Origin: Phaeosaccion multiseriatum | Taxonomy: Eukaryota > Protista > Ochrophyta, other classes | Length of the DNA: 64,000 nt | Reading direction: 5' to 3' | Assembly (NCBI GenBank): GCA_965112735.1 | Contig: OZ218956.1 | Span: 3,100,001 to 3,164,000 of the forward strand | Shown here: piece by piece, positions 4,757 through 56,400 of the stretch | How positions within the stretch are numbered: position 1 is the first letter of the stretch | How the letters are laid out: every line of letters starts with the position of its first letter | The notes under the pieces: model-generated | What the model was told of the DNA's origin: nothing | Seen by the model: the letters and a program-made list of their open reading frames with translations, nothing else | Database searches by the model: none | Position numbers and translations under genes: made by a program

Positions 4757-5088
4757 TGACATGCTTCTGAGACAGGCCAGCCCAGAAGCAGCAAGCAGGC
4801 CGGCTGGCGCCGGCCAGAAGCAGGAAGCAGGGTCGCCTCAGAAGCATGTCAGGGGCCGAATAGCTATTGAAGGCTCAAAAAAAGAACAAGAAAAAAGAAA
4901 CATAATGGAAGGATCGCAGGCCAGCCCACAACCAGGAACCAGGCCGGCTGGCGCAGACCAGAAGCAGGAACCAACCTTGGCCCTCATCATTGCCTTATTA
5001 CATGGCTTTCCCCCAGAACCTGGAACCTGCCTGGCCGGCTGGCGCCGGCCAGAAGCAGGAACCAGGGTCGCCTCAGAAGCATGTCAGG
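4757..5088. mobile_element. MITE-like palindromic repeat element (family member 1)
   Basis: Inverted ends TGACATGCTTCTGAG ... CTCAGAAGCATGTCA, with the right end present twice (~4838-4858 and ~5072-5088). Internal GCCGGCTGGCGCCGGCCAGAAGCAGGAA units. Near-identical short copy at 34175-34250. Confidence 0.65.
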
Positions 5089-30761: not shown

Positions 30762-32536
30762 GAACAAGGGTCAGCGGGAGGGCGATAGTACCACCAAGGG
30801 CATTGGTGCAAAGCCCCTCCGCCTCCTGGACTCACACAGGTACCCCTTCAGGAGAGTTAGCAATGCTGTAACCGTCACCACCGCCAAGGCGCGTCGCCTG
30901 CTGCCGAAGCGGAACAAGGAGCAAGAGCAGAAGCAAGCCAAGCAGCGCCATCTTCGAAGCGTCATGAAGTACGCCGTGGAGCTCGCACGAGCCTTGCACT
31001 ACCTCCACCAGGGCCTGTCTCGCCCGCGGCAGCAGCAGCCGTTGGTGATACAGCAGCAGCAGCAGCAGGAGGAGGAGGAGGAGGAGGAGAAGGAGGTTGG
31101 CATGTGGGATACTCGTGATGGTAGCGATAGCGGCGGCGGGGAGCCAGGAGGGGCGGCGCTCGAGGAGGAAGAACACATGACCCTCATTCATCGAGACTTA
31201 AAGCCGGGGAACATTGGCGTGAGAGCAGACGGAACAATTGGTGAGTAGGACTGGGGGAGGGGGGGGGATGGATGGCAGTGGATGGCCGTGGATGGCAATG
31301 AATGGCAGTGGGTGAAGGTGGAGGGCTGTGGCGCATCCCTTCCTTGTCCAGCGCTTGTGTACGGCTTGCCGCCGCTAGGGCTGCATCTCTTTCTCTGGCA
31401 CCAATTTTGCTTGTCTCTGATCGTTCTATCCCCCTCTCTGTCTCTCCCTCCCGCCCTCCCCTATCTCCCTCTCCCTCTCTTTTCTCCCTCTTGTGTCTGA
31501 TCAACAAACAACAAACAAAACAAACAAACAAACAAACAAACAAACAAACCCAACACACCAAACAACAAAAACATACAAATTAGCACTCCTTGACTTCGGG
31601 CTCGCCAAGGCTTGCCCAAGAAGCATCACAAGAGCGGCGCTTTGCAGGGGTGCCGCAGGGGTGGGGCGGGGGATCAATGCGCGGCGACGCTGTACTAGAC
31701 CACCAACACCAGCCGGACTAATGACAAGATCACCAACAGCTCTACTTCCCTTCCAAGAGCCGTCGCCATCTGCGCGCTTGGCCCTCTCGACACGCTTTCC
31801 ATCCCCCAGGGAGGTAGCAGCAGCGGCAGCTGGAATGAAGCCCCATCAGCAGTTGGTGATACAGCGACGGAGGCTCAGAACGGCACCCTTTTTTGACGGA
31901 GGATTTGGCGATGGCGAGGGTGGGCAAGAAAACGCGTGTTCCCTCCGCCTTCAGCAGGGGGCAAAGATTGAGACTAAGGAGGAGGAGGAGGAGGAGGAGA
32001 AGGAGATGAGAAAAGAGGAGGGGGGGGAGGAGGAGGAGAAGGAGGAGGAGGAGGAGGACGAGGAGGAGGAGGTGGAGGACGAGGAGGAGGAAGATGAGGA
32101 GGAGAAAAAAAGGGACAAAACGGAGGAGAAGGGCCGCCAAAAAGGGAAGGAACAAGAACAAGAAAAAGAAGCAGAACTAGAAGGAGACGGAGAAGGTGAC
32201 TACTGCGCGATGAACATGACAGGGGGCTGTGGGAGCGTGCGCTACATGTCGCCGGAGTGCTTTTCGCATCTACCCTACAACCAAAGCACCGACATATACT
32301 CCCTGGGCATGGTGGTGTGGGAAATGCTCGCTCAACGGAAGCCCTTTGAAACGGTTACGGTGGAGACGTTCCCTCTTCGTGTTTGTCAGTTGCGAGAGAG
32401 GCCCCCTCTGGACGCCGAGTGGCCGGCAGGGGTAAGAAGGACGCTGGAGGAGTGCTGGGACCACACGCCGAAGCGGAGACCCTCGGCAAGGGAGGTGGGC
32501 ATCCGGCTGCAGGCTTGCTTGGACGCGTTGATGTGA
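29696..32536 (+). CDS. Tyrosine-kinase-like (TKL) protein kinase; apparent frameshift in the G-run at ~30335-30350; intron ~31241-31583
   Basis: LGRGSYCDV and ALKVI in one frame; HANVISLLG and IHRDLKPGNI in another frame; then LLDFGLAK, GSVRYMSPE, DIYSLG, CWDHTPKRRP. Confidence 0.85.
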
Positions 32537-33091: not shown

Positions 33092-33631
33092 CAGACCCCC
33101 CGTCAATGCGGGCGGTCTATAAATGGCCCTAGCGAAGCAAGTGGTCATATTCTCGACCCCTGACACGCTATCGCTCACATTCTCGATAGCGCGCTATCGG
33201 CCGCCGGCCAATAGCGGATAGCGTGCCGGCTGGCGCCGGCCGATAGCGGATAGCGTGCCGGCTGGCGCCGGCCGATAGCGGATAGCGCGCCGGCTGGCGT
33301 CAGCTCTCCCCCCCCCCCCCCCCCCGGTGCGGTAGCAGCTGACGCTGGCGATAGCGGATAGCGCGCCGGCTGGCGCCGGCGATAGCGGATAGCGCGCCGG
33401 CTGCGCGCCGGCGATAGCGGATAGCGAGCCGGCTACGCCGGCGATAGCGGATAGCGAGCCGGCTACGCCGGCGATAGCGGATAGCGAGCCGGCTACGCCG
33501 GCGATAGCGGATAGCGCGCCGGAGATAGCGGATAGCGTGCCGGCTGGCGCCGGCGATAGCGTTAGCGGATAGCGTGTCAGGGGTCGAATATTCATCACAT
33601 TTTACAGACCCCCCCGCATTGCGGGGCGTCT
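33092..33631. mobile_element. Foldback/MITE-like element with nested inverted repeats and an internal minisatellite (family member 3)
   Basis: Inner TIR TCGACCCCTGACACGCTATC ... GATAGCGTGTCAGGGGTCGA. Outer imperfect IR AGACCCCCCGTCAATGCGGGCGGTCTATAAATG / CATTTTACAGACCCCCCCGCATTGCGGGGCGTCT. Interior has ~10 GCCGGCT(GG/A)CGCCGGCGATAGCGGATAGCG units. No transposase. Confidence 0.75.
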
Positions 33632-34174
33632 ACACAATGTGGCCAGGTGGCCACGTCATATAGCTCGCATATCATGACGGGCTCCTGGGTGCCTTCTCCT
33701 CATGGCGGTTTCCATCGCGCGAGTCACAAGCGGCTCGAATGTCCTCGCTCCTTGATGGGTAGTGGCTGCGTAGCAATCTCTGCTCCTCGCCTGGCGGGGC
33801 GGGGTGCTGGGGTGGAGGAGAGGAGGACGATGGGTTGTCGCTCAGTCGTCTATTCTTGTAATCCTGAATCGAGGCGGGAGGAGAACAAGTGTGGGCGGTG
33901 TGGAGGCCTGACATGGGTATGTTCGTATGTACCATCGGGTGCCATCCCTCCTCTCCCTCCTTTGCATACCGTGAAGACTCCACACCAAGGCGAGCCCCCT
34001 TGTTTTTCTGAAACTTCCCCCAACACCGCGCCCTCCTCGTCGCTATGGAAGGTGTTGGAGAGTGTGTCTGGTGTCTGGGGCAGGCTACATGACGGGAGGG
34101 TGAAGGAGGAGGAGTCGAACTTCACTAGTGACGACCGAGAAAGAGGTTGGGGAGCGGCGCAATCGTCACAGGAT

Positions 34175-34250
34175 CGGCCCCTGACATGCTTCTGAGACAG
34201 GCCAGCCCAGAAGCAGAAAGCAGGGTCGCCTCAGAAGCACGTCAGGGGCC
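34175..34250. mobile_element. Minimal 76-bp MITE-like hairpin element (family member 4)
   Basis: 22-bp TIR CGGCCCCTGACATGCTTCTGAG / CTCAGAAGCACGTCAGGGGCCG (1 mismatch). Interior near-identical to 4757-4858. Confidence 0.75.
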
Positions 34251-34421
34251 GAACAGGAGGGGCTGGGGCGGCTGAAACTGAAACTAATGCATCACACACT
34301 CTCTGGTCATCAAAAGGGAAGTGGACGTATTCGTCATCCAACCAAACTCACAGCTGGCCGCAATTCCGTTCGTCTACAAGTACATGCAGAGCATTGGTGT
34401 AATAAAAAAAAAAAGAAGACA

Positions 34422-37085
34422 ATGCTAATGATGAGAGCAATGTCGTTGAGGGGGGTGGTCAGAATCTGCTACTCCTCTTGCATTGGCAGGAAAAGAAGAG
34501 GACCCGCTGCTGGACGGCGTCCCCACTCTGACTCTTTACTACATCAGCACAAGCAGCTGCCGCAGCAATGGTCCTGCTACTCCAATGGGGGAAGTGACAA
34601 GTCGAGGCAGATACGGCTCATGAGGGAGATCCAGGATCTGGGGAGGAGCAAGGATTGGAAGAGGGTTGCACCTACTCTGGAGCGCGCACGGCGAGAAGGC
34701 CTCAGGCCTAATCTGTACTGTTTGAGTGCTGCTATTACCGCGATTGGGAAGTGCGGACGGTGGAAGGGCGCTTTGGCTCTCTTGGCAGAGATGAAGAAGG
34801 AAGGCTTCAGGCCAGGCGTGATCAGTTATAACTCCACTATGTACGCATGCGCCAAAGCAAGCAAATACGAGGAGGCATTGCGTTTACTGAGGGAGATGAA
34901 GGCAGAAGGACTTGCTCCCGATGTAATCAGCTACAACGCCACCATTGACGCATGCGCCAGAGCCAGCCAACACGTGGAGGCAATGGGTTTACTGAGGGAG
35001 ATGAAGGCAGAAGGACTCGCTCCCAATGCAATCAGCTATAGCACCACCATTAACGCATGCGCCAGAGCAAGCCAACACGTGGAGGCGATGGGTTTACTGA
35101 GGGAGATGAAGGCAGAAGGACGCGCTCCAGACGTAATCAGCTACAGCGCCACCATTGACGCATGCGCCAGAGCCAGCCAGCACGTGGAGGCAATGGGTTT
35201 ACTGAGGGAGATGAAGGCAGAAGGACTCGCTCCCAACGTAATCAGCTACAGCGCCACCATTAACGCATGCGCCAGAGCAAGCCAACACTTGGAAGCAATG
35301 GGTTTACTGAGGGAGATGAAGAAGGAAGGACTCGCTCCCAATGCAATCAGCTATAGCACCACCATTAACGCATGCGCCAGAGCCAGCCAACACGTAGAGG
35401 CAATGGGTTTACTGAGGGAGATGAAGGCAGAAGGACTTGCTCCCGATGTAATCAGCTACAACGCCACCATTGACGCATGCGCCAGAGCCAGCCAACACGT
35501 GGAGGCAATGGGTTTACTGAGGGAGATGAAGGCAGAAGGACTCGCTCCCGATGTAATCAGCTACAACTCCACCATTAACGCATGCGCCAGATCCAACCAA
35601 CACGTGGAGGCATTGCGTTTACTGAGGGAGATGAAGGCAGAAGGACTCGCTCCGGGTGTAATCAGCTACAGCGGCACCATTCACGCATGCGCCAGAGCCA
35701 ACCAACACGTGGAGGCAATGGATTTACTGAGGGAGATGAAGGCAGAAGGACTCGCTCCAGACATAATCAGCTACAACGCCACCATTAACGCATGCGCCAG
35801 AGCCAACCGACACGCGGAGGCAATAGGTTTACTGAGGGAGATGAAGGCAGAAGGACTCGCTCCAGACGTTATCAGCTACAGCTCCACCATTGACGCATGC
35901 GCCAGTGCCAGCCAACACGTGGAGGCAATGGATTTACTGAGGGAGATGAAGGCAGAAGGAGTCACTCCCAATGCAATCAGCTACAACTCCACCATTGACG
36001 CATGCGCCAGAGCCAGCCGACACGCGGAGGCAATAGGTTTACTGAGGGAGATGAAGGCAGAAGGACTCGCTCCAGACGTTATCAGCTACAGCTCCACCAT
36101 TAACGCATGCGCCAAGGCCAGCCAACACGTGAAGGCAATGAGTTTACTGAGGGAGATGAAGGCAGAAGGACTCGCTCCAGACGTTATCAGCTACAGCTCC
36201 ACCATTAACGCATGCGCCAAGGTCAGCCAACACGTGGAGGCAATGAGTTTACTGAGGGAGATGAAGGCAGAAGGACTCGCTCCAGACGTAATCAGCTACA
36301 GCTCCACCATTGACGCATGCGCCAAGGCCAGCCAACACGTGGAGGCATTGGGTCTACTGAGGGAGATGAAGGCAGAAGGACTCGCTCCCAATGCAATCAG
36401 CTACAGCGCCACCATTAACGCATGCGCCCGAGCCAGCCAACACGTGGAGGCAATGGATTTACTGAGGGAGATGAAGGGAGAAGGACTTGCTCCTAATGCA
36501 ATCAACTACAGCGCCACCATAAACGCATGCGCCAGAGCCAGCCAACACGTGGAGGCAATGGATTTACTGAGGGAGATGAAGGCAGAAGGACTCGCTCCAG
36601 ACGTAATCAGCTACAGCTCCACCATTGACGCATGCGCCAAGGCCAGCCAACACGTGGAGGCATTGGGTTTATTGAGTGAGATGAAGGCAGAAGGACTCGC
36701 TCCCAATGCAATCAGCTACAGCTCCACCATTGACGCTTTGCAGGAGGGTGGCGACGAGGCGGCTGCTGACGAGCTGTACGCAGAGGCCGAATCGCAAGGG
36801 GTCTTGAAGCACTGGAAGAAGGGGGGCCAGGAAGTGGACTTGCACGACTTCACCAGGGGAACGAGCAAGGCAGCGCTTCGTCACGTGCTCTCAGAGGCGA
36901 AGGCGGGGGCTGAGATCAAGGTCATCACAGGCCGAGGCCGAGGCAGTGAGGACGGTGTCAGCGTTCTCAAGGCCGCGGTGCTGGCCTATTTGCAGGAGAG
37001 GCCGGGCGTCGAAGTATGGGAAGACAGACACAACCCGGGGATGGTGGTGATGCGAGTCACCGGTCCGGCAGCAACAGCCCTCTGA
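34422..37085 (+). CDS. P-class PPR-SMR protein, copy A (20 PPR motifs + C-terminal SMR domain), intronless, putative organellar transit peptide
   Basis: Tandem 35-aa motifs VISY(N/S)xTIxACAxASQHVEAMxLLREMKAEGLAP(D/N), with a 105-bp period from 34713 to ~36812. SMR: VDLHDF...IKVITGRGRGS...VLKAAV...NPGMVV. Arg/Ser-rich, acid-poor N-terminus. Confidence 0.95.
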   Translation: MLMMRAMSLRGVVRICYSSCIGRKRRGPAAGRRPHSDSLLHQHKQLPQQWSCYSNGGSDKSRQIRLMREIQDLGRSKDWKRVAPTLERARREGLRPNLYCLSAAITAIGKCGRWKGALALLAEMKKEGFRPGVISYNSTMYACAKASKYEEALRLLREMKAEGLAPDVISYNATIDACARASQHVEAMGLLREMKAEGLAPNAISYSTTINACARASQHVEAMGLLREMKAEGRAPDVISYSATIDACARASQHVEAMGLLREMKAEGLAPNVISYSATINACARASQHLEAMGLLREMKKEGLAPNAISYSTTINACARASQHVEAMGLLREMKAEGLAPDVISYNATIDACARASQHVEAMGLLREMKAEGLAPDVISYNSTINACARSNQHVEALRLLREMKAEGLAPGVISYSGTIHACARANQHVEAMDLLREMKAEGLAPDIISYNATINACARANRHAEAIGLLREMKAEGLAPDVISYSSTIDACASASQHVEAMDLLREMKAEGVTPNAISYNSTIDACARASRHAEAIGLLREMKAEGLAPDVISYSSTINACAKASQHVKAMSLLREMKAEGLAPDVISYSSTINACAKVSQHVEAMSLLREMKAEGLAPDVISYSSTIDACAKASQHVEALGLLREMKAEGLAPNAISYSATINACARASQHVEAMDLLREMKGEGLAPNAINYSATINACARASQHVEAMDLLREMKAEGLAPDVISYSSTIDACAKASQHVEALGLLSEMKAEGLAPNAISYSSTIDALQEGGDEAAADELYAEAESQGVLKHWKKGGQEVDLHDFTRGTSKAALRHVLSEAKAGAEIKVITGRGRGSEDGVSVLKAAVLAYLQERPGVEVWEDRHNPGMVVMRVTGPAATAL

Positions 37086-37699
37086 GCGGAAGGAGAGGCG
37101 TAGATGGATCCGTGGGGCGAAGGCAACGCAAGCGCTCAACAGCAGCAGAGTCCCACGTGTCTCGCCAGGTGTGCGTGACTGTGGCGCTGCTTGGTATGGT
37201 ATAGAGAGAAGAAGGAAGGCCTCCGATTCGCGTGAGCGAGCGGAGACTCGACTGAGTTCGGCACCAAGGTCCCTGGCACTGGGAGCAAGCGGAGGGACGG
37301 GCAAGGCGCAGACAAACTCACTAGGACAGGACAGGAGTCGCGAAGAGCAATACGCAGGAGGAGAGCGAATCGAGGGGAGGGGGGGGGGCTGGAGGCGACG
37401 GGTGACATAGGCAGCGGGGTCAATTTCCCTCTGTCTCTCTTTCTGTGTTTGTGGGGGACCAAGGACGAAGCATCAAATTTCAGCTTAGAATTGGCGTCAT
37501 AAATGAGACCCTTTCGATTGAATGATCGAATATATTAACGTAAACAGGAAGGGAGGGAAGGCGATTACGCGGCTCTTCTTCAGCGCCACCCTTGCTACTA
37601 CTGCGCCCCCACCCTCACAACATCCACAAACGCTTTCCTTCACTTCGACTAGTTATCCTGCCTCGCCTCTTGCTCCCACATCTCCTCTCTCTCGCACGT

Positions 37700-37832
37700 T
37701 ACTCCAGAGAAGGTACCTCTCGCAGGATGCAAACGATGCCCCACCTTTGGCTTCAAAGCTCGGCCGTACTCCAGAGATGTACCTCTCGCAGGATGCAAAC
37801 GATGCCCCCACCTTTGGCTCCAAAGCTCGGCC
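37700..37832. repeat. Two-copy ~66-bp direct repeat
   Basis: TACTCCAGAGA...TACCTCTCGCAGGATGCAAACGATGCCCC..CCTTTGGCT.CAAAGCTCGGCCG occurs twice. Confidence 0.88.
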
Positions 37833-38169
37833 GTCGGCGCGTCGCCGGAGGGGCAGGAGGCTACACCCCCCCCCTTACTCGTGGCTCATTTCTTTCTATA
37901 ACGCCATTCTGAAACGCCATGTTTAACTACATGTACTGTGCATATCAAGGTAGAACCCAGGGAGGCGCTGGACGCCGCCGCTGCTACTCCTACACTGCCT
38001 GCTCCTCCTCCCCCTCCTCCTCCTCCTTCAACTGCTGTATTGCCAACTTGCTGCAGCTGTATCACCAAAGCGCTGCTGCTGTATCACCAACTGCTGCATC
38101 GAACGACACACCACAGGAATCTCCTCCCCTCCCTCCCTCCCTCCCTCCCTGCCACTCCCCCTCCTCCAA

Positions 38170-39215
38170 TCAAAGCATCTGCACGTAATTGGATGGAAAG
38201 AGCCCTCGCTTGCCGAACCTCTCGCCCGTCCACCATCCACTGTCGTGCTGCTCCAAGACAGTCAACATATCGCCCGCTGCCATTGAAATCTCCGTTGCGT
38301 CCTGGGCTTCATAGGCGTACAGCGCTTTGGCCTGCTTGCCCCCCCCTGCTCCACCCCCGCCCGGAGGTGGTGGAGGAGGAGCCGCCGCACGAGGACCGCC
38401 GAAGCTGCCCCCCCCTCCTCCTCCTCCTCCTCCTCCTCCTCCTCCTCCTGCTCCTGCTCCGGCCCCTCCTCCTCCGGATCCCTTGCTCGGCTCATCCCAC
38501 CAGCTCCCTCCCGCTCCACCTCCCCCGCTCCCCATCCACGCCGCGTTGACGTTGGGTTCGTCCCTCGCTGCCGAGCTGACATCGTCCTCCCCTCCATAAC
38601 CACCTCCTCCTCCTCCTCCTCCTCTCCAGGGCTGCTCTCCCCCCCCGCCCCCGCCCGCACGCAGGTCCGCCCTACTCCCCTGAGGGGAGAGACTGCGTGG
38701 GCCCCCGCTCCCGACGGATCCGTAGTATCCCCCCCCCCCTCCTCCTCCTCCGTACCCTCCTCCCCCTGCTCCGTTGTCCATGTCAACAACAATGTCCCTC
38801 GACATGCCGTCCCTTCCAATCTTCTCTACTTCGTCGCTCACGTCCTTAGGATTCTTGAGCGTTACATCTCGGACGGTGTTGTAGGCTGCCTCGAAGAAGG
38901 TTCGCTGGGCACGCTTGAACATCTCCACCTCGGCTTGCACTAGGCGCCCTCCAATGGCGTCGTAGTAGTTGAATATCCTGCGGTTGAAGCGGAGGAGGAG
39001 GTGGGGGGGGGGGGGTGAGGAGGAGGAGGGGGAGGAGGGAGGGGGAGGGGAGGAGGCGTTGGGCGGGGGATAGCCTACACCATGGCTGGGAAGTTGAAAG
39101 CACGATAACACGCGTAAAGACAACAACCATACATAAAACACGCACCTATTCTATACACACACACACTCGTCGACATGCACACACACTTCCACACACTTCC
39201 CCACACACAAACACA

Positions 39216-50948: not shown

Positions 50949-53198
50949 TCAGAGGGCTGTTGCTGCCGGACCGGTGACTCGCATCACCACCATCCCCGGG
51001 TTGTGTCTGTCTTCCCATACTTCGACGCCCGGCCTCTCCTGCAAATAGGCCAGCACCGCGGGCTTGAGAACGCTGACACCGTCCTCACTGCCTCGGCCTC
51101 GGCCTGTGATGACCTTGATCTCAGCCCCCGCCTTCGCCTCTGAGAGCACGTGACGAAGCGCTGCCTTGCTCGTTCCCCTGGTGAAGTCGTGCAAGTCCAC
51201 CTCCTGGCCCCCCTTCTTCCAGTGCTTCAAGACCCCTTGCGATTCGGCCTCTGCGTACAGCTCGTCAGCAGCCGCCTCGTCGCCACCCTCCTGCAAAGCG
51301 TCAATGGTGGAGCTGTAGCTGATTGCATTGGGAGCGAGTCCTTCTGCCTTCATCTCACTCAATAAACCCAATGCCTCCACGTGTTGGCTGGCCTTGGCGC
51401 ATGCGTCAATGGTGGAGTTGTAGTTGATTACGTCTCGAGCGAGTCCTTCTGCCTTCATCTCCCTCAGTAAATCCATTGCCTCCACGTGTTGGCTGGCTCT
51501 GGCGCATGCGTTTATGGTGGCGCTGTAGTTGATTACATTAGGAGCAAGTCCTTCTCCCTTCATCTCCCTCAGTAAATCCATTGCCTCCACGTGTTGGCTG
51601 GCTCGGGCGCATGCGTTAATGGTGGCGCTGTAGCTGATTACGTCTGGAGCGAGTCCTTCTGCCTTCATCTCCCTCAGTAAACGCAATGCCTCCACGTGTT
51701 GGCTGGCCTTGGCGCATGCGTCAATGGTGGAGCTGTAGTTGATTACGTCTGGAGCGAGTCCTTCTGCCTTCATCTCCCTCAGTAAACTCATTGCCTCCAC
51801 GTGTTGGCTGGCCTTGGCGCATGCGTTAATGGTGGAGCTGTAGCTGATAACGTCTGGAGCGAGTCCTTCTGCCTTCATCTCCCTCAGTAAACTCATTGCC
51901 TCCACGTGTTGGCTGGCCTTGGCGCATGCGTTAATGGTGGAGTTGTAGCTGATAACGTCTGGAGCGAGTCCTTCTGCCTTCATCTCCCTCAGTAAACCTA
52001 TTGCCTCCGCGTGTCGGCTGGCTCTGGCGCATGCGTCAATGGTGGAGTTGTAGCTGATTGCATTGGGAGTGACTCCTTCTGCCTTCATCTCCCTCAGTAA
52101 ATCCATTGCCTCCACGTGTTGGCTGGCACTGGCGCATGCGTCAATGGTGGAGCTGTAGCTGATAACGTCTGGAGCGAGTCCTTCTGCCTTCATCTCCCTC
52201 AGTAAACCTATTGCCTCCGCGTGTCGGTTGGCTCTGGCGCATGCGTTAATGGTGGCGTTGTAGCTGATTATGTCTGGAGCGAGTCCTTCTGCCTTCATCT
52301 CCCTCAGTAAATCCATTGCCTCCACGTGTTGGTTGGCTCTGGCGCATGCGTGAATGGTGCCGCTGTAGCTGATTACACCCGGAGCGAGTCCTTCTGCCTT
52401 CATCTCCCTCAGTAAACGCAATGCCTCCACGTGTTGGTTGGATCTGGCGCATGCGTTAATGGTGGAGTTGTAGCTGATTACATCGGGAGCGAGTCCTTCT
52501 GCCTTCATCTCCCTCAGTAAACCCATTGCCTCCACGTGTTGGCTGGCTCTGGCGCATGCGTCAATGGTGGCGTTGTAGCTGATTACATCGGGAGCGAGTC
52601 CTTCTGCCTTCATCTCCCTCAGTAAACGCAATGCCTCCACGTGTTGGCTTGCTCTGGCGCATGCGTTAATGGTGGCGCTGTAGCTGATTACGTCTGGAGC
52701 GAGTCCTTCTGCCTTCATCTCCCTCAGTAAACGCAATGCCTCCACGTATTGGCTTGCTTTGGCGCATGCGTATATAGTGGAGTTATAGCTGATCACGTCT
52801 GGCCTGAAGCCTTCCTTCTTCATCTCTGCCAAGAGAGCCAAAGCGCCCTTCCACCGCCCGCCATTCCCAATCGCGGTAATCGCAGCATTTAAACAGTACA
52901 GATTAGGCCTGAGGCCTTCTCGCCGTGCGCGCTCCAGAGTAGGTGCAACCCTCTTCCAATCCTTGCTCCTCCCCAGATCCTGGATCTCCCTCATGAGCCG
53001 TATCTGCCTCGACTTGTCACTTCCACCAGTGGAGTAGCAGGACCATTGCTGCGGCAGCTGCTTGTGCTGATGTAGTAAAGAGTCAGAGTCGGCACGCCGT
53101 TCAACACCTCCTCCTACTACTCTTCTATTCCTGCCAATGCAAGAGGAGTAGCAGGTTCTGACCACCCCCCTCAACGACATTGCACTCCTCATTAGCAT
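50949..53198 (-). CDS. P-class PPR-SMR protein, copy B (16 PPR motifs + SMR), inverted paralog of copy A
   Basis: Same architecture as copy A with four fewer 105-bp repeats. The SMR domain differs by one residue (A>P). The ~340-bp 3' flank (50611-50948) also matches 37086-37420. Confidence 0.95.
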   Translation of the reverse strand: MLMRSAMSLRGVVRTCYSSCIGRNRRVVGGGVERRADSDSLLHQHKQLPQQWSCYSTGGSDKSRQIRLMREIQDLGRSKDWKRVAPTLERARREGLRPNLYCLNAAITAIGNGGRWKGALALLAEMKKEGFRPDVISYNSTIYACAKASQYVEALRLLREMKAEGLAPDVISYSATINACARASQHVEALRLLREMKAEGLAPDVISYNATIDACARASQHVEAMGLLREMKAEGLAPDVISYNSTINACARSNQHVEALRLLREMKAEGLAPGVISYSGTIHACARANQHVEAMDLLREMKAEGLAPDIISYNATINACARANRHAEAIGLLREMKAEGLAPDVISYSSTIDACASASQHVEAMDLLREMKAEGVTPNAISYNSTIDACARASRHAEAIGLLREMKAEGLAPDVISYNSTINACAKASQHVEAMSLLREMKAEGLAPDVISYSSTINACAKASQHVEAMSLLREMKAEGLAPDVINYSSTIDACAKASQHVEALRLLREMKAEGLAPDVISYSATINACARASQHVEAMDLLREMKGEGLAPNVINYSATINACARASQHVEAMDLLREMKAEGLARDVINYNSTIDACAKASQHVEALGLLSEMKAEGLAPNAISYSSTIDALQEGGDEAAADELYAEAESQGVLKHWKKGGQEVDLHDFTRGTSKAALRHVLSEAKAGAEIKVITGRGRGSEDGVSVLKPAVLAYLQERPGVEVWEDRHNPGMVVMRVTGPAATAL

Positions 53199-53473: not shown

Positions 53474-56400
53474 TTAGGGCATGATTCCATTGGAAAGCCA
53501 CTGGAAGCTGTCGTACTGGGCGGTGGTGTAACTGTTCATGCTCTCACGAATGAGGTCCAGGCAACGGGCGACGGTACGTGTCTTGTCTAGGCTTGGGACC
53601 AGGCGCTATGTGGTGAAAGGGTAGAGCACAGGGGGAGGGGGGGAGGAGAACAAACACCATGAGCACGCCCATGCAGAGGGAGGGGGGGGGGGGGGGGAGG
53701 AGGAGAAGGGAGATTGAGGGGCGGGGGGGAATGGGGAGGGAAGGACAAGAGATTAGATTAGGCATAAGGGGGGGGGAGGGGAGGGGAGGGGGCGAAGGGA
53801 AGGAAAGAGGGACATATCCTTACTAGCTGGAAGGGGCGAGGGAGAGTCAAGTAAGTGGATGGAGTGGATGGAGTGGGTGGAGTGGATGGAGTGGATGGAG
53901 TGGATGGAGTGGGTGGAGTGGGTGGAGTGAATGGAGTGGATGGAGTGGGTGGAGTGGATGGAGCGGTGGAGTGGGTGGAGTGGATGGAGTGGATGGAGGG
54001 GGTGGATGGCTGAGAGAGGGTGGAGTGGATGGAGTGGATGGAGTGGATGGAGTGGATGGAGCGGATGGAGTGGGTGGATGGGTGAGAGAGGGAGGGACAC
54101 ACAAACGTCAACACAGCACCTTATCCAGACCCCTGGGGACGGATAGCCCATGTACTGGTCGTCGTCGGAGCGGTTCTGTAACGTCTACTTATCGTACGAT
54201 AAAAAGTGAAACTGAAACGAGCACAGGACACCGAAGACGAGTGCGACAGAGACACCGTCATACCACCCCTCCCACCTGCTTAAGCTTGTTGAGAATGGCG
54301 TTGCTGTCCTTGCCCGCAAAGCACTTGAGAGGGGACTTGAATGTAAGCATCTTCACGAGGGTGAGGATGCGGTCAGAGTGCGATTGGAGAGCGAGGAAGC
54401 CGCAGGTGAAGGCCACCACGAAGTCCATAAAGGTCTGCAGATGGAATGGCAGCAGATGCATGGGGATGGATGGCAGCAGATGCATGTGGATAGATGGCAG
54501 CAGATACATGGGGATGGATGGCAGCAGATGCATGGGGATGGATGGCAGCAGATACATGGGGATGATGGCAGCAGATGCATGGGGATGGATGGCAGCAGAT
54601 GCATGGGGATGGATGGCAGCAGATGCATGGGGATGGATGGCAGCAGATGCATGGGGATGGATGGCAGCAGATACATGGGGATGGATGGCAGAAGATGCAC
54701 GGGGATGGATGGCAGCAGATGCATGGGGATGGATGGCAGCAGATACATGGGGATGGATGGCAGCAGATGCATGGGGATGGATGGCAGCAGATACATGGGG
54801 ATGGATGGCAGCAGATGCATGGGGATGGATGGCAGAAGAAGGCGACTGTGATTGGTAATCGTTTGATGGAGAGTGAAAGTGAATTAGTGAGTGAGGGGGT
54901 GAGTGAGTGGGTGAGTGAGTGAGTGGGTGAGTGAGTATGAGAGAGAGAGAGACCAATGCACATGCCCCAAGTAGTACACTCACTCCCCACCCACCCAAGT
55001 GCCCTCACTTCCCACCCACCTGCGACTCCACGCCCCCCATCACCTGAACCATCTCTGGCGTGAGTTTGAAAGGGCTCGTCTCCAGGCTGAAGGTGCCCCC
55101 CGGGGCCGTGCCCAGGATGAAACCGAAGTCAATGTGCACCAAGTGGCCGTCCTTGGGGGATGAGAGAGTGGAGGGGTGAGGTGGGTGAGTGGGTGGGTTG
55201 GTGGGATAGTTGGTGGTGAGTGGGCGGGTGAGTGAGTGAGTGAGTAAGCTAATGAAGGGGTGGGTGGGTGGGTGTTCAGTGGGAGAGTGAGTCAAGGAGA
55301 AGAAGAAGGAGGAGGAGGAGGAGGAGGAGGAGGAGGAGGAGGAGGAGGAGGAGGAGGAGGAAGAGGAGGAAGAGGAGGAGGAGGAGGAGGAAGAGGAGGA
55401 GGAGGAGGAGGAGGAGGAGGAGGAGGAGGAGGAGGAGGAGGAGAAGAGAGAAGAGGACTGTAGCACAATGCCTGGACTGGAACCGAACACTCACCGCAGA
55501 GAGCAGCACGTTTCCGTTGTGCCTTGTAAGTCAATGAGTGAGGCGAGTGATGTGAGAGGGTTTGGGGGGGATGGGAGGGGTGGGAGGGGTGGGAGGGGAG
55601 GGCGGTGAGGGAGATGAAGGGAGGGAGGCGAGGGGCGGGAGCGGAGGGAGGGAGGTCAACGATGAGGTGAGGGGAGGGACAGCAGCGGAGGGGGCGGAGG
55701 TGAGGGAGGGGATGGGGGGAGGGGAGGGGAGGGGAGGGGAGGGGAGGGGAGGGGAGGGGAGGGGAGGGGAGGGGAGGGGAGGGGAGAGGAGGGACAGAGG
55801 GAGGGAGGGAGGGAGGGAGGGAGGGAGGGAGGGAGGGAGGGAGGGAGGGAGGGAGGGAGGGAGGGAGGGAGGGAGGGAGGGAGGGAGGGATGGAGGGAGG
55901 GATGGAGTGAGGGAGAAAGAGCTTCACACCTGTCCTTGATCTGGAACACGTAGCAGGCGAGACTGTAAGCAGCGGTGGACGACACGAAGGCCCTCTGAGC
56001 GTCTTTGAAGGGCTGACCACTGGGGCTGGGCACGGCACAGCGTGGCAAGGCAAGGCAAGGGGTTAGGAAGGGGAGGGGTGAGCAGACGTTACACAACCGT
56101 TACAGAGAGAAGTTCTTTTTTCTCCTCTTCCTCTGTCGCCTCCCCTCCTCCCCTTCCTCTACCCAATGCTGCTGCCTCTACTGGTGCAGTGCTTCTCCTC
56201 CACCTACCCTCCCTCCCCCCTCCCCCCATCCCCCCTTCCCTCCCCCTCACCTGCCGTATATATTCTCAAAATGCTTCTTGAGTCCCGGGAAGTTAGGCTT
56301 CTTCTTGATGCTGTCGAGCGAAGCCATGTTGGTCAGCGTCTGCAGCAGGCCTGTAGTTAAGTCAATAAGTGTAAGTCAACGAATGTATCCTGGTTAGCCG

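Follow-up and report, generated by a model that had tools for sequence, protein, structure and literature searches.

The stretch analysed here, a window of 64,000 nucleotides of the Phaeosaccion multiseriatum genome (contig OZ218956.1, positions 3,100,001 to 3,164,000), carries two genes for pentatricopeptide repeat (PPR) proteins ending in an Smr domain, referred to here as gene A and gene B. Gene A is an intact single-exon algal PPR-SMR gene, and gene B is a shorter convergent paralogue. Comparison of the two brings out the family's mode of evolution. Purifying selection preserves the scaffold, repeats come and go as entire units, gene conversion swaps short cassettes, and recent substitutions are concentrated at the two code codons of the motif (residues 5 and 35). 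The paralogues have therefore gained different predicted RNA targets. The features of the two genes, with the basis of each assignment, are as follows.

34422..37085, plus strand: gene A, single-exon coding sequence of an 887-residue PPR-SMR protein, stop codon included (list of open reading frames (ORFs); Pfam PPR_2, E-value 9e-173, and Smr)
34422..34541, plus strand: N-terminal 40 residues of gene A, Arg-rich and presequence-like (9 R/K, 1 D/E)
34713..34817, plus strand: PPR motif 1, residues 98-132, divergent, code pair S/G (about 52 of 105 nt away from the array units; nearest relative is motif 1 of gene B, at 7 nt)
34818..36707, plus strand: PPR motifs 2-19, eighteen 105-bp modules that are about 90% identical (Tandem Repeats Finder, dPPR-U10 register, entropy and codon tables)
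35448..36077, plus strand: motifs 8-13 of gene A, 630 nt identical to motifs 4-9 of gene B (52586-51957, minus strand; unit distances 0)
36708..36812, plus strand: PPR motif 20, a half-degenerate linker into the Smr domain, code pair S/H (aligned to designer PPR repeats; helices at 4-16 and 20-32 in an AlphaFold2 (AF2) model)
36828..37082, plus strand: Smr domain, with VDLH (36834-36845), TGRG (36927-36938) and NPG (37032-37040) (Pfam Smr)
37086..37425, plus strand: 3' flank common to genes A and B, a probable 3' untranslated region (blastn of the flanks, 99% identity over 36700-37425)
50949..53198, minus strand: gene B, convergent paralogue of 749 residues whose N-terminus and Smr tail are those of gene A and whose array is four repeats shorter (translation, motif table, blastn)

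The open frame of gene A spans 34287-37085 on the plus strand and so extends upstream of the chosen ATG; the start was taken at 34422 because homology with gene B begins only about 8 nt upstream of it. Gene B has no in-frame ATG further upstream than the start common to both genes. The G+C content is about 57%. An exact-protein look-up with the gene A product gave no record.

Following the divergent first motif, the array of gene A is highly regular. Tandem Repeats Finder reports a period of 105 bp with 18.0 copies, 90% matches and no indels (34843-36736, score 2899), which bears out the description in the earlier note on this DNA, made by a model from the letters alone, of PPR modules nearly identical at DNA level. 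The divergence that it ascribed to the first motif was likewise recovered. Motif 2 is intermediate, while motifs 3-19 lie within 0-8 nt of 105 from their nearest neighbours. A 28-mer singled out in the earlier note has 14 exact and two one-mismatch occurrences in gene A and 13 more in gene B, with 0 expected by chance. At the protein level PPR_2 matches in 19 stretches (with the E-value given above) and the PPR, PPR_1 and PPR_3 profiles also match; the remaining Pfam rows, in which no stretch passes on its own, are repeat-driven noise. The features of a P-class PPR protein are thus present, namely tandem 35-residue motifs matching PPR profiles and an exact 105-nt period.

The best matches among sequences with solved structures are the designer proteins dPPR-U10, dPPR-U8A2 and dPPR-U8G2 (E-value about 1e-88), cPPR and maize PPR10. 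The motif register was set by gap-free alignment to dPPR-U10 (5i9f), which places V-I-S-Y-N/S of the query on V-V-T-Y-N of dPPR; in this register, residue 5 is the N or S after Tyr and residue 35 the D or N after Pro. Across motifs 2-19, position 5 is N in six motifs and S in twelve, and position 35 is D in ten, N in seven and G in one, in agreement with the toggling of S/N and D/N/G noticed earlier. The code string reads ND NN SD SN SN SD ND NG SD ND SN ND SD SD SN SN SD SN, in which 17 of the 18 pairs are ND, NN, SN or SD, all of them biochemically validated, the remaining one being NG. Crystal structures of designer PPRs show ND bound to U and SN bound to A, and in binding assays SD recognises G and NN accepts U and C to the same extent (PMC4837458). 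Read with these validated pairs, motifs 2-19 give the predicted target U Y G A A G U n G U A U G G A A G A, exactly the string proposed in the earlier note.

The other RNA-contacting residues of the motifs are also in place. Position 2 is Ile and position 5 is N or S in all 18 motifs, while position 13 is R or K and position 35 D or N in 17 of 18. In dPPR the base is sandwiched by Val2, and binding depends on Lys13, which holds the phosphate (PMC4837458); because Ile2 and R/K13 match these roles, the tract has what RNA binding needs, and we infer that it binds RNA.

Genes A and B are 13.9 kb apart, and their identity is a mosaic. It stands at 93%, with gaps, over the N-terminal part, at 97.8% over 2194 nt starting within motif 5 (blastn) and at 99% between motif 20 and a point 340 nt downstream of the stop codon. 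The units flanking the 630-nt identical tract (motifs 8-13 of gene A, 4-9 of gene B) differ by 1-7 nt, and the tract is a recent gene-conversion or recombination tract. Motifs 3-7 of gene A correspond to a single chimeric unit, motif 3, in gene B. Short blocks recur at the junctions between motifs: there are six instances of CCC-AAT, one of them a CCT variant, before GCA (Ala1 of the next motif), seven of CCA-GAC before GTx (ATA in one instance) and three of CCC-GAT before GTA. Between motifs 16/17 of gene A and 12/13 of gene B, CCC-AAT with GCA is swapped for CCA-GAC with GTA. The swap comprises four linked nucleotide changes within eight bases, and therefore at least that code switch came about by gene conversion and not by point mutation. 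The four-gamete test agrees on the scale of the unit, with 71 of 190 informative site pairs showing all four combinations and a minimum number of events (Rm) of at least 8, by recombination or homoplasy, inside 105 nt.

The mosaic of identity points to repeated exchange. Shuffling of repeats, put forward in the earlier note as a way in which the scaffold could be reprogrammed, occurs naturally between genes A and B, as seen from the four-repeat difference, the 630-nt identical tract and the cassette swap. The predicted target of gene B reads U U G U n G U A U U G G A G Y, and besides the missing part it differs from that of gene A at three of 12 aligned positions. From motif 8 onward the two genes differ by 12 nonsynonymous and three synonymous changes.

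The variation among the units is not confined to the code residues. By entropy, positions 22, 6 and 9 of gene A rank above position 35, which is fourth, and position 5 ranks ninth; by nonsynonymous diversity the order is 6, 22, 1, 35, 9, 13, 21, 29, 18 and 5. Synonymous diversity among the gene A units is 0.155 and nonsynonymous diversity 0.083, and the array-wide dN/dS is about 0.5. Ratios of nonsynonymous to synonymous diversity (pN/pS) for sets of codons, with pN of each set scaled to the global synonymous diversity, are as follows.

Codons 5 and 35: 1.3 in gene A, 1.7 in gene B
Codons 1, 6, 9 and 13: 1.7 in gene A, 2.0 in gene B
Codons 18, 21 and 22: 1.4 in gene A, 2.4 in gene B
Remaining 26 codons: 0.19 in gene A, 0.27 in gene B

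The 26 scaffold codons are under purifying selection, and nine hot codons (1, 5, 6, 9, 13, 18, 21, 22 and 35) are free or favoured to vary. The earlier note had allowed that a few other positions also vary; they do, but this was an understatement, as seven codons equal or exceed 5 and 35. It had also named, as an outcome that would speak against its proposal, variability at 5 and 35 no higher than elsewhere, and by entropy these positions are indeed neither uniquely nor maximally variable. Positions 18 and 22 are presumably exposed helix-b residues of the designer scaffold, judging from the alignment and general knowledge of the fold rather than from coordinates. Positions 1, 5, 6, 9 and 13 are on helix a and face the RNA in dPPR (PMC4837458).

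A different picture is given by recent change, which was followed in 15 positional pairs of A and B units and the three closest pairs within an array. In these young pairs, codons 5 and 35 show 0.074 nonsynonymous changes per site, compared with 0.010 for the other 33 codons, a density about 6-7 times higher (Fisher p 0.0002 for all young pairs, p 0.004 for the A/B pairs alone). Omega comes to about 2.2 for the code codons, as against some 0.3-0.4 for the remainder. Five of the 14 young amino-acid changes fall at 5 or 35, with p 0.0008 against a uniform distribution and p 0.18 when only the nine hot positions are considered. In two cases a single nucleotide separates the units and recodes them: motifs 3 and 8 of gene A differ by D35 to N35, and motifs 10 and 11 of gene B by S5 to N5.

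Gene A appears to belong to a sizeable family. The stretch is contained in five public runs from two studies, all of them short assembled contigs; one run, X5, from the second study, contains only 13% of its words. Over 33600-37900, the flanks and the first 130 nt of gene A have single-copy contig depth (86.6 in run X1). Relative to this, the summed contig depth, which is not a copy number, is about 30-57 times higher in the conserved N-terminal region, about 9-445 times in the repeats and about 100 times in the Smr tail, which indicates tens of PPR-SMR copies in the genome.

No close relative of the gene A protein came to light: its best full-length matches show 40-49% identity over about half of the query, and its full-length relatives are found in dinoflagellates (Noctiluca, Symbiodiniaceae), brown algae, diatoms and unnamed marine metatranscriptomes. 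One relative of the Smr tail comes from the ochrophyte Chrysoparadoxa australica. Scans of JGI metagenomes gave no match to the C-terminal 265 residues and none to a 23-mer of the repeat. Repeat uniformity was compared across 69 homologues by the identity between residues 35 apart (lag-35 identity), taken over the 350-residue segment that scored best. Both genes A and B score 0.81, followed by Durusdinium trenchii with 0.77 and Noctiluca with 0.61-0.62, most others being at about 0.3 or below. The Durusdinium trenchii protein (g24625.t1, P0013) has 13 near-identical PPR motifs at residues of about 250-700, and its most variable positions, 35 and 2, are both RNA-contact positions. Because this array is also uniform, such arrays are rare but not unique to the genome of P. 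multiseriatum. They seem to be undescribed: the literature search found no description of near-identical or homogenised PPR repeats and none of PPR expansions in stramenopiles or haptophytes, and a paper on the Isochrysis mitogenome mentions PPRs only in passing.

The domain order of the protein is a PPR tract followed by the C-terminal Smr domain, with no other catalytic domain. Against Pfam Smr the whole protein scores 26.5 bits and the isolated tail 30.3 bits (cut-off 25.7). The DLH, ITGRG and NPG motifs attributed to the SMR domain in the earlier note were all located in the tail, within the longer conserved strings VDLHDF (36834-36851), ITGRGRGS (36924-36947) and HNPGMV (37029-37046), and VDLH and TGRG are intact in gene B as well. 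LDxH (XaDxH) together with TGxG defines the nuclease-type Smr subfamily (PMC3858433, PMC12787238). A word-indexed homologue search with the tail (residues 760-887) found no match, which is a limit of that tool, since an exhaustive HMMER search (1.8 billion representatives) found 173 relatives. Among 30 aligned relatives, 24 of which also match Pfam Smr, the D and H of DLH and both G of TGRG are invariant, and NPG retains its N in at least 90% of them and its G in every one. Built on this alignment, the AF2 model of the linker motif and tail has a mean predicted local distance difference test (pLDDT) value of 92.2, with strands at 45-47, 72-76, 104-109 and 112-120 and helices at 53-66 and 89-99. 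Its top Foldseek matches in the PDB are the Smr domain of B3BP/NEDD4BP2, PAP2/pTAC2 (template modelling (TM) score 0.69-0.70) and the Smr domain of MutS2. As far as its sequence goes, the gene A product is a genuine PPR-SMR protein with every feature that code-based RNA binding and Smr catalysis would need.

At the other end of the protein, the N-terminus shows a longest apolar run of four residues and a top 12-residue Kyte-Doolittle mean of 1.18, with an Arg inside that window; it has no hydrophobic core and no signal peptide of the endoplasmic reticulum type, and gene B is similar. As it lacks a signal peptide, a plastid destination is unlikely, and our best guess is that the N-terminus looks mitochondrial rather than plastid-directed. 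The suggestion of mitochondrial import from an Arg/Ser-rich N-terminus is in keeping with the Arg-rich, acid-poor composition, import itself being an expectation from it.

The surroundings of the two genes also contain a number of other features. Gene A is flanked by ORF fragments of a protein-kinase C-lobe (31493-32536) and an SH3 domain (38170-39141), which look like exons of ordinary intron-containing genes, unlike the single-exon PPR-SMR genes. A near-perfect hairpin of 79 nt with 23-nt arms lies at 34174-34252, about 170 nt upstream of the gene A ATG (DNA fold -28.3 kcal/mol, z -5.6). Related copies are found at 4757-4863 and 5049-5088, and with a contig-depth bin of about 500 times single-copy it looks like a very abundant palindromic element resembling miniature inverted-repeat transposable elements. 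Gene A has a run of 11 A (34404-34414) immediately ahead of the short leader and ATG that it has in common with gene B, which lacks the run. Retroposition was considered as the origin of the intronless copies and was rejected: the A/B homology stops 340 nt past the stop codon with no poly(A) at its end, and the A-run, missing from gene B, is not a retroposition scar. Beyond the A/B homology, some 600 nt past the end of gene A, a 67-bp unit is tandemly duplicated with 94% identity (37700-37834). Just upstream of gene B is a G-rich minisatellite block (53854-55915) made up of a 9-mer repeated 25 times, a 24-mer 17 times, AGG 50 times and GGGA/GGGGA 70-80 times, and this block accounts for the GC-skew peak of 0.52 at 54-56 kb.

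We consider it probable that genes A and B belong to a large lineage-specific family of organellar, code-reading PPR-SMR proteins that process RNA and evolve by repeat turnover and recoding, in an alga with complex plastids. The Arg-rich presequence would carry the protein into an organelle, most likely the mitochondrion, where the 19-20 stacked PPR motifs would each read one base of a single-stranded RNA about 18-20 nt long by means of residues 5 and 35, with Ile2 and the basic residue 13 supplying the stacking and phosphate contacts. The Smr domain, lying at the 3' side of the bound RNA, may then cut or otherwise process it, as shown for Arabidopsis SOT1. A review states that SOT1 is an RNA endonuclease and that, once recoded, it cut a new substrate (PMC11897456).

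Several observations weigh against this interpretation. The predicted targets of genes A and B have no match within the window, where about 0.2-0.4 would be expected by chance, and none of the five public runs containing gene A is recorded as RNA. The targeting call is drawn from N-terminal composition only, and to our knowledge most plant PPR-SMRs act without demonstrated cleavage. With respect to recoding, the seven non-code codons (1, 6, 9, 13, 18, 21 and 22) vary as much as or more than 5 and 35, and the excess of omega over 1 at the code codons is not significant (p 0.07-0.13 against synonymous change). Furthermore, some code changes came by conversion with linked synonymous changes and are hence not independent events.

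The alternative that survives best, a minor but real possibility, is that the proteins bind RNA sequence-specifically without cutting it, acting to block exonucleases, remodel RNA or activate translation, with the Smr domain contacting proteins or the ribosome, as in PPR53/ATP4, or playing a structural part like that of PAP2/pTAC2 in the plastid RNA polymerase. The best superposition of the linker motif and Smr domain is in fact with PAP2/pTAC2 in polymerase complexes, and reviews list several PPR-SMRs with stabilising, translational or splicing roles (PMC12787238, PMC11897456). However, the gene A tail keeps both the LDxH-type and the TGxG motif, unlike pTAC2, and in Arabidopsis the two occur together in only one PPR-SMR, GUN1 (PMC3858433); the D, H, G and G that are invariant across the 30 relatives argue for retained catalysis.

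A stronger version of the RNA-processing interpretation, which we entertain only tentatively and think rather unlikely, is that the family is a natural set of sequence-specific RNA endonucleases, reprogrammable by recombination, which are recoded at 5 and 35 to track changing targets and cut them with Smr. Such targets may include selfish or rearranged organellar transcripts, or RNA parasites. The set would then be an algal counterpart that merges the arms-race logic of restorer-of-fertility-like proteins with a TALEN-like build. The label of a candidate natural programmable RNA endonuclease, given in the earlier note, accordingly fares differently in its parts: homogeneous repeats and code-competent residues are borne out, and the endonuclease is a hypothesis.

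It is improbable that this is a recently amplified family drifting with no specific function, in which near-identity merely reflects young tandem duplication and the variation is neutral. Such drift would sit well with the 12 to 3 ratio of nonsynonymous to synonymous differences between genes A and B from motif 8 onward, with the array-wide dN/dS and with the free variation of the helix-b surface positions 18 and 22. It does not fit the open frames of 887 and 749 codons that have been kept, the low pN/pS of the 26 scaffold codons, the intact catalytic motifs in both copies or the fact that positions 5 and 35 take only code-competent residues.

Quite improbable, too, is a role in cytosolic or nuclear defence, in which diversifying programmable RNA nucleases would act against RNA viruses or transposon transcripts and not on organellar RNA. 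A multi-copy, fast-reshuffling family with differing predicted targets, in which recent change is concentrated at the code residues, could be expected of such a system. Nevertheless, the N-terminus resembles an organellar presequence and is conserved between genes A and B, no viral or transposon target was identified, and the neighbouring ORFs include no defence genes. All characterised PPR-SMRs are organellar (PMC3858433).

Finally, it is very improbable that the array length or repeat order of gene A was produced by mis-assembly of a repetitive family, for although no public contig spans the array and the short contigs show many alternative junctions, such junctions are expected from other family members, unique flanks of single-copy depth run into the gene at both ends, and two independent copies each have a perfect frame and a distinct order of units.

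That a PPR-SMR protein can cut RNA where its repeats dictate is known from SOT1. Natural PPR tracts are usually degenerate and hard to read, while gene A approaches an engineered scaffold, with code pairs that are almost all laboratory-validated and an Smr domain with both catalytic motifs. If expressed and active, the family, with its many arrays built on a common scaffold, would offer a natural set on which to test the PPR code as well as a source of compact programmable RNA nucleases. It would also be a second independent case, outside the flowering plants, of fast nuclear-organellar or host-parasite co-evolution through PPR recoding. If inactive, it would still be a clear case of concerted evolution inside a helical-repeat protein. 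The family is of real relevance to work on PPR proteins and on programmable RNA tools.

Among known systems, the transcription activator-like effectors (TALEs) and the nucleases derived from them (TALENs) resemble gene A in having near-identical tandem modules, one base per module, a specificity that is shifted by swapping modules or hypervariable residues, and a binding array fused to, or employed with, a nuclease. They differ in their unrelated sequence and fold, in binding double-stranded DNA and in being bacterial effectors. TALE variation is also almost confined to the two repeat-variable diresidue (RVD) positions, which is not so in gene A. The TALE analogy drawn in the earlier note therefore fits with regard to module shuffling and recoding, whereas the idea of modules identical except at the code residues holds only loosely, given the seven variable non-code positions. 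Designer PPRs (dPPR, cPPR) share with gene A a uniform consensus scaffold, changed mainly at residues 5 and 35, and the same pairs ND, NN, SN and SD; they are its best sequence matches in the PDB (E-value 4e-88) and align in register, and the consensus of the gene A array is about 40% identical to dPPR. The designer proteins are synthetic and carry no nuclease, and gene A also varies at positions 1, 6, 9, 13, 18, 21 and 22.

PPR-SMR proteins have been described in heterokonts (PMC3858433) and dinoflagellates (PMC12787238), complex-plastid algae in which the architecture is the same and XaDxH and TGxG are retained (PMC12787238). Dinoflagellates usually have one or two, and at most four or five, homologues per species (PMC12787238), whereas contig depth points to tens in P. 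multiseriatum, and the repeat uniformity of gene A exceeds that of all 69 homologues retrieved. The plant PPR-SMRs (SOT1, GUN1, pTAC2/PAP2, SVR7, PPR53/ATP4 and PPR-SMR1) share with gene A a P-class tract running directly into a C-terminal Smr domain, the latter being of TGxG/LDxH subfamily-2 type, and gene A resembles GUN1, alone among those of Arabidopsis, in keeping both Smr motifs (PMC3858433). They are otherwise encoded by few genes conserved as orthologues and have degenerate motifs, in contrast to gene A, which is one of tens of fast-changing paralogues and has motifs about 90% identical in DNA. By analogy, the closest functional model for gene A would be SOT1.

With respect to evolution, the family is most reminiscent of the restorer-of-fertility-like (RFL) PPRs of angiosperms, which are likewise P-class proteins with 15-20 motifs encoded by clustered paralogues (PMC5075784). 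Unequal crossing-over and gene conversion shape the RFL genes, together with the gain and loss of entire motifs, and a high turnover at positions 5 and 35 alters the predicted RNA (PMC5075784). They differ from gene A in having no Smr domain and no near-identical motifs within one protein, and no counterpart of cytoplasmic male sterility is known for gene A. Because of its Smr tail, and because its nearest relatives are algal and protist PPRs at 40-49% identity, gene A lies outside the angiosperm RFL clade; its family is a convergent RFL analogue, for which the restorer-of-fertility-like PPRs would serve, by analogy, as the closest evolutionary model.

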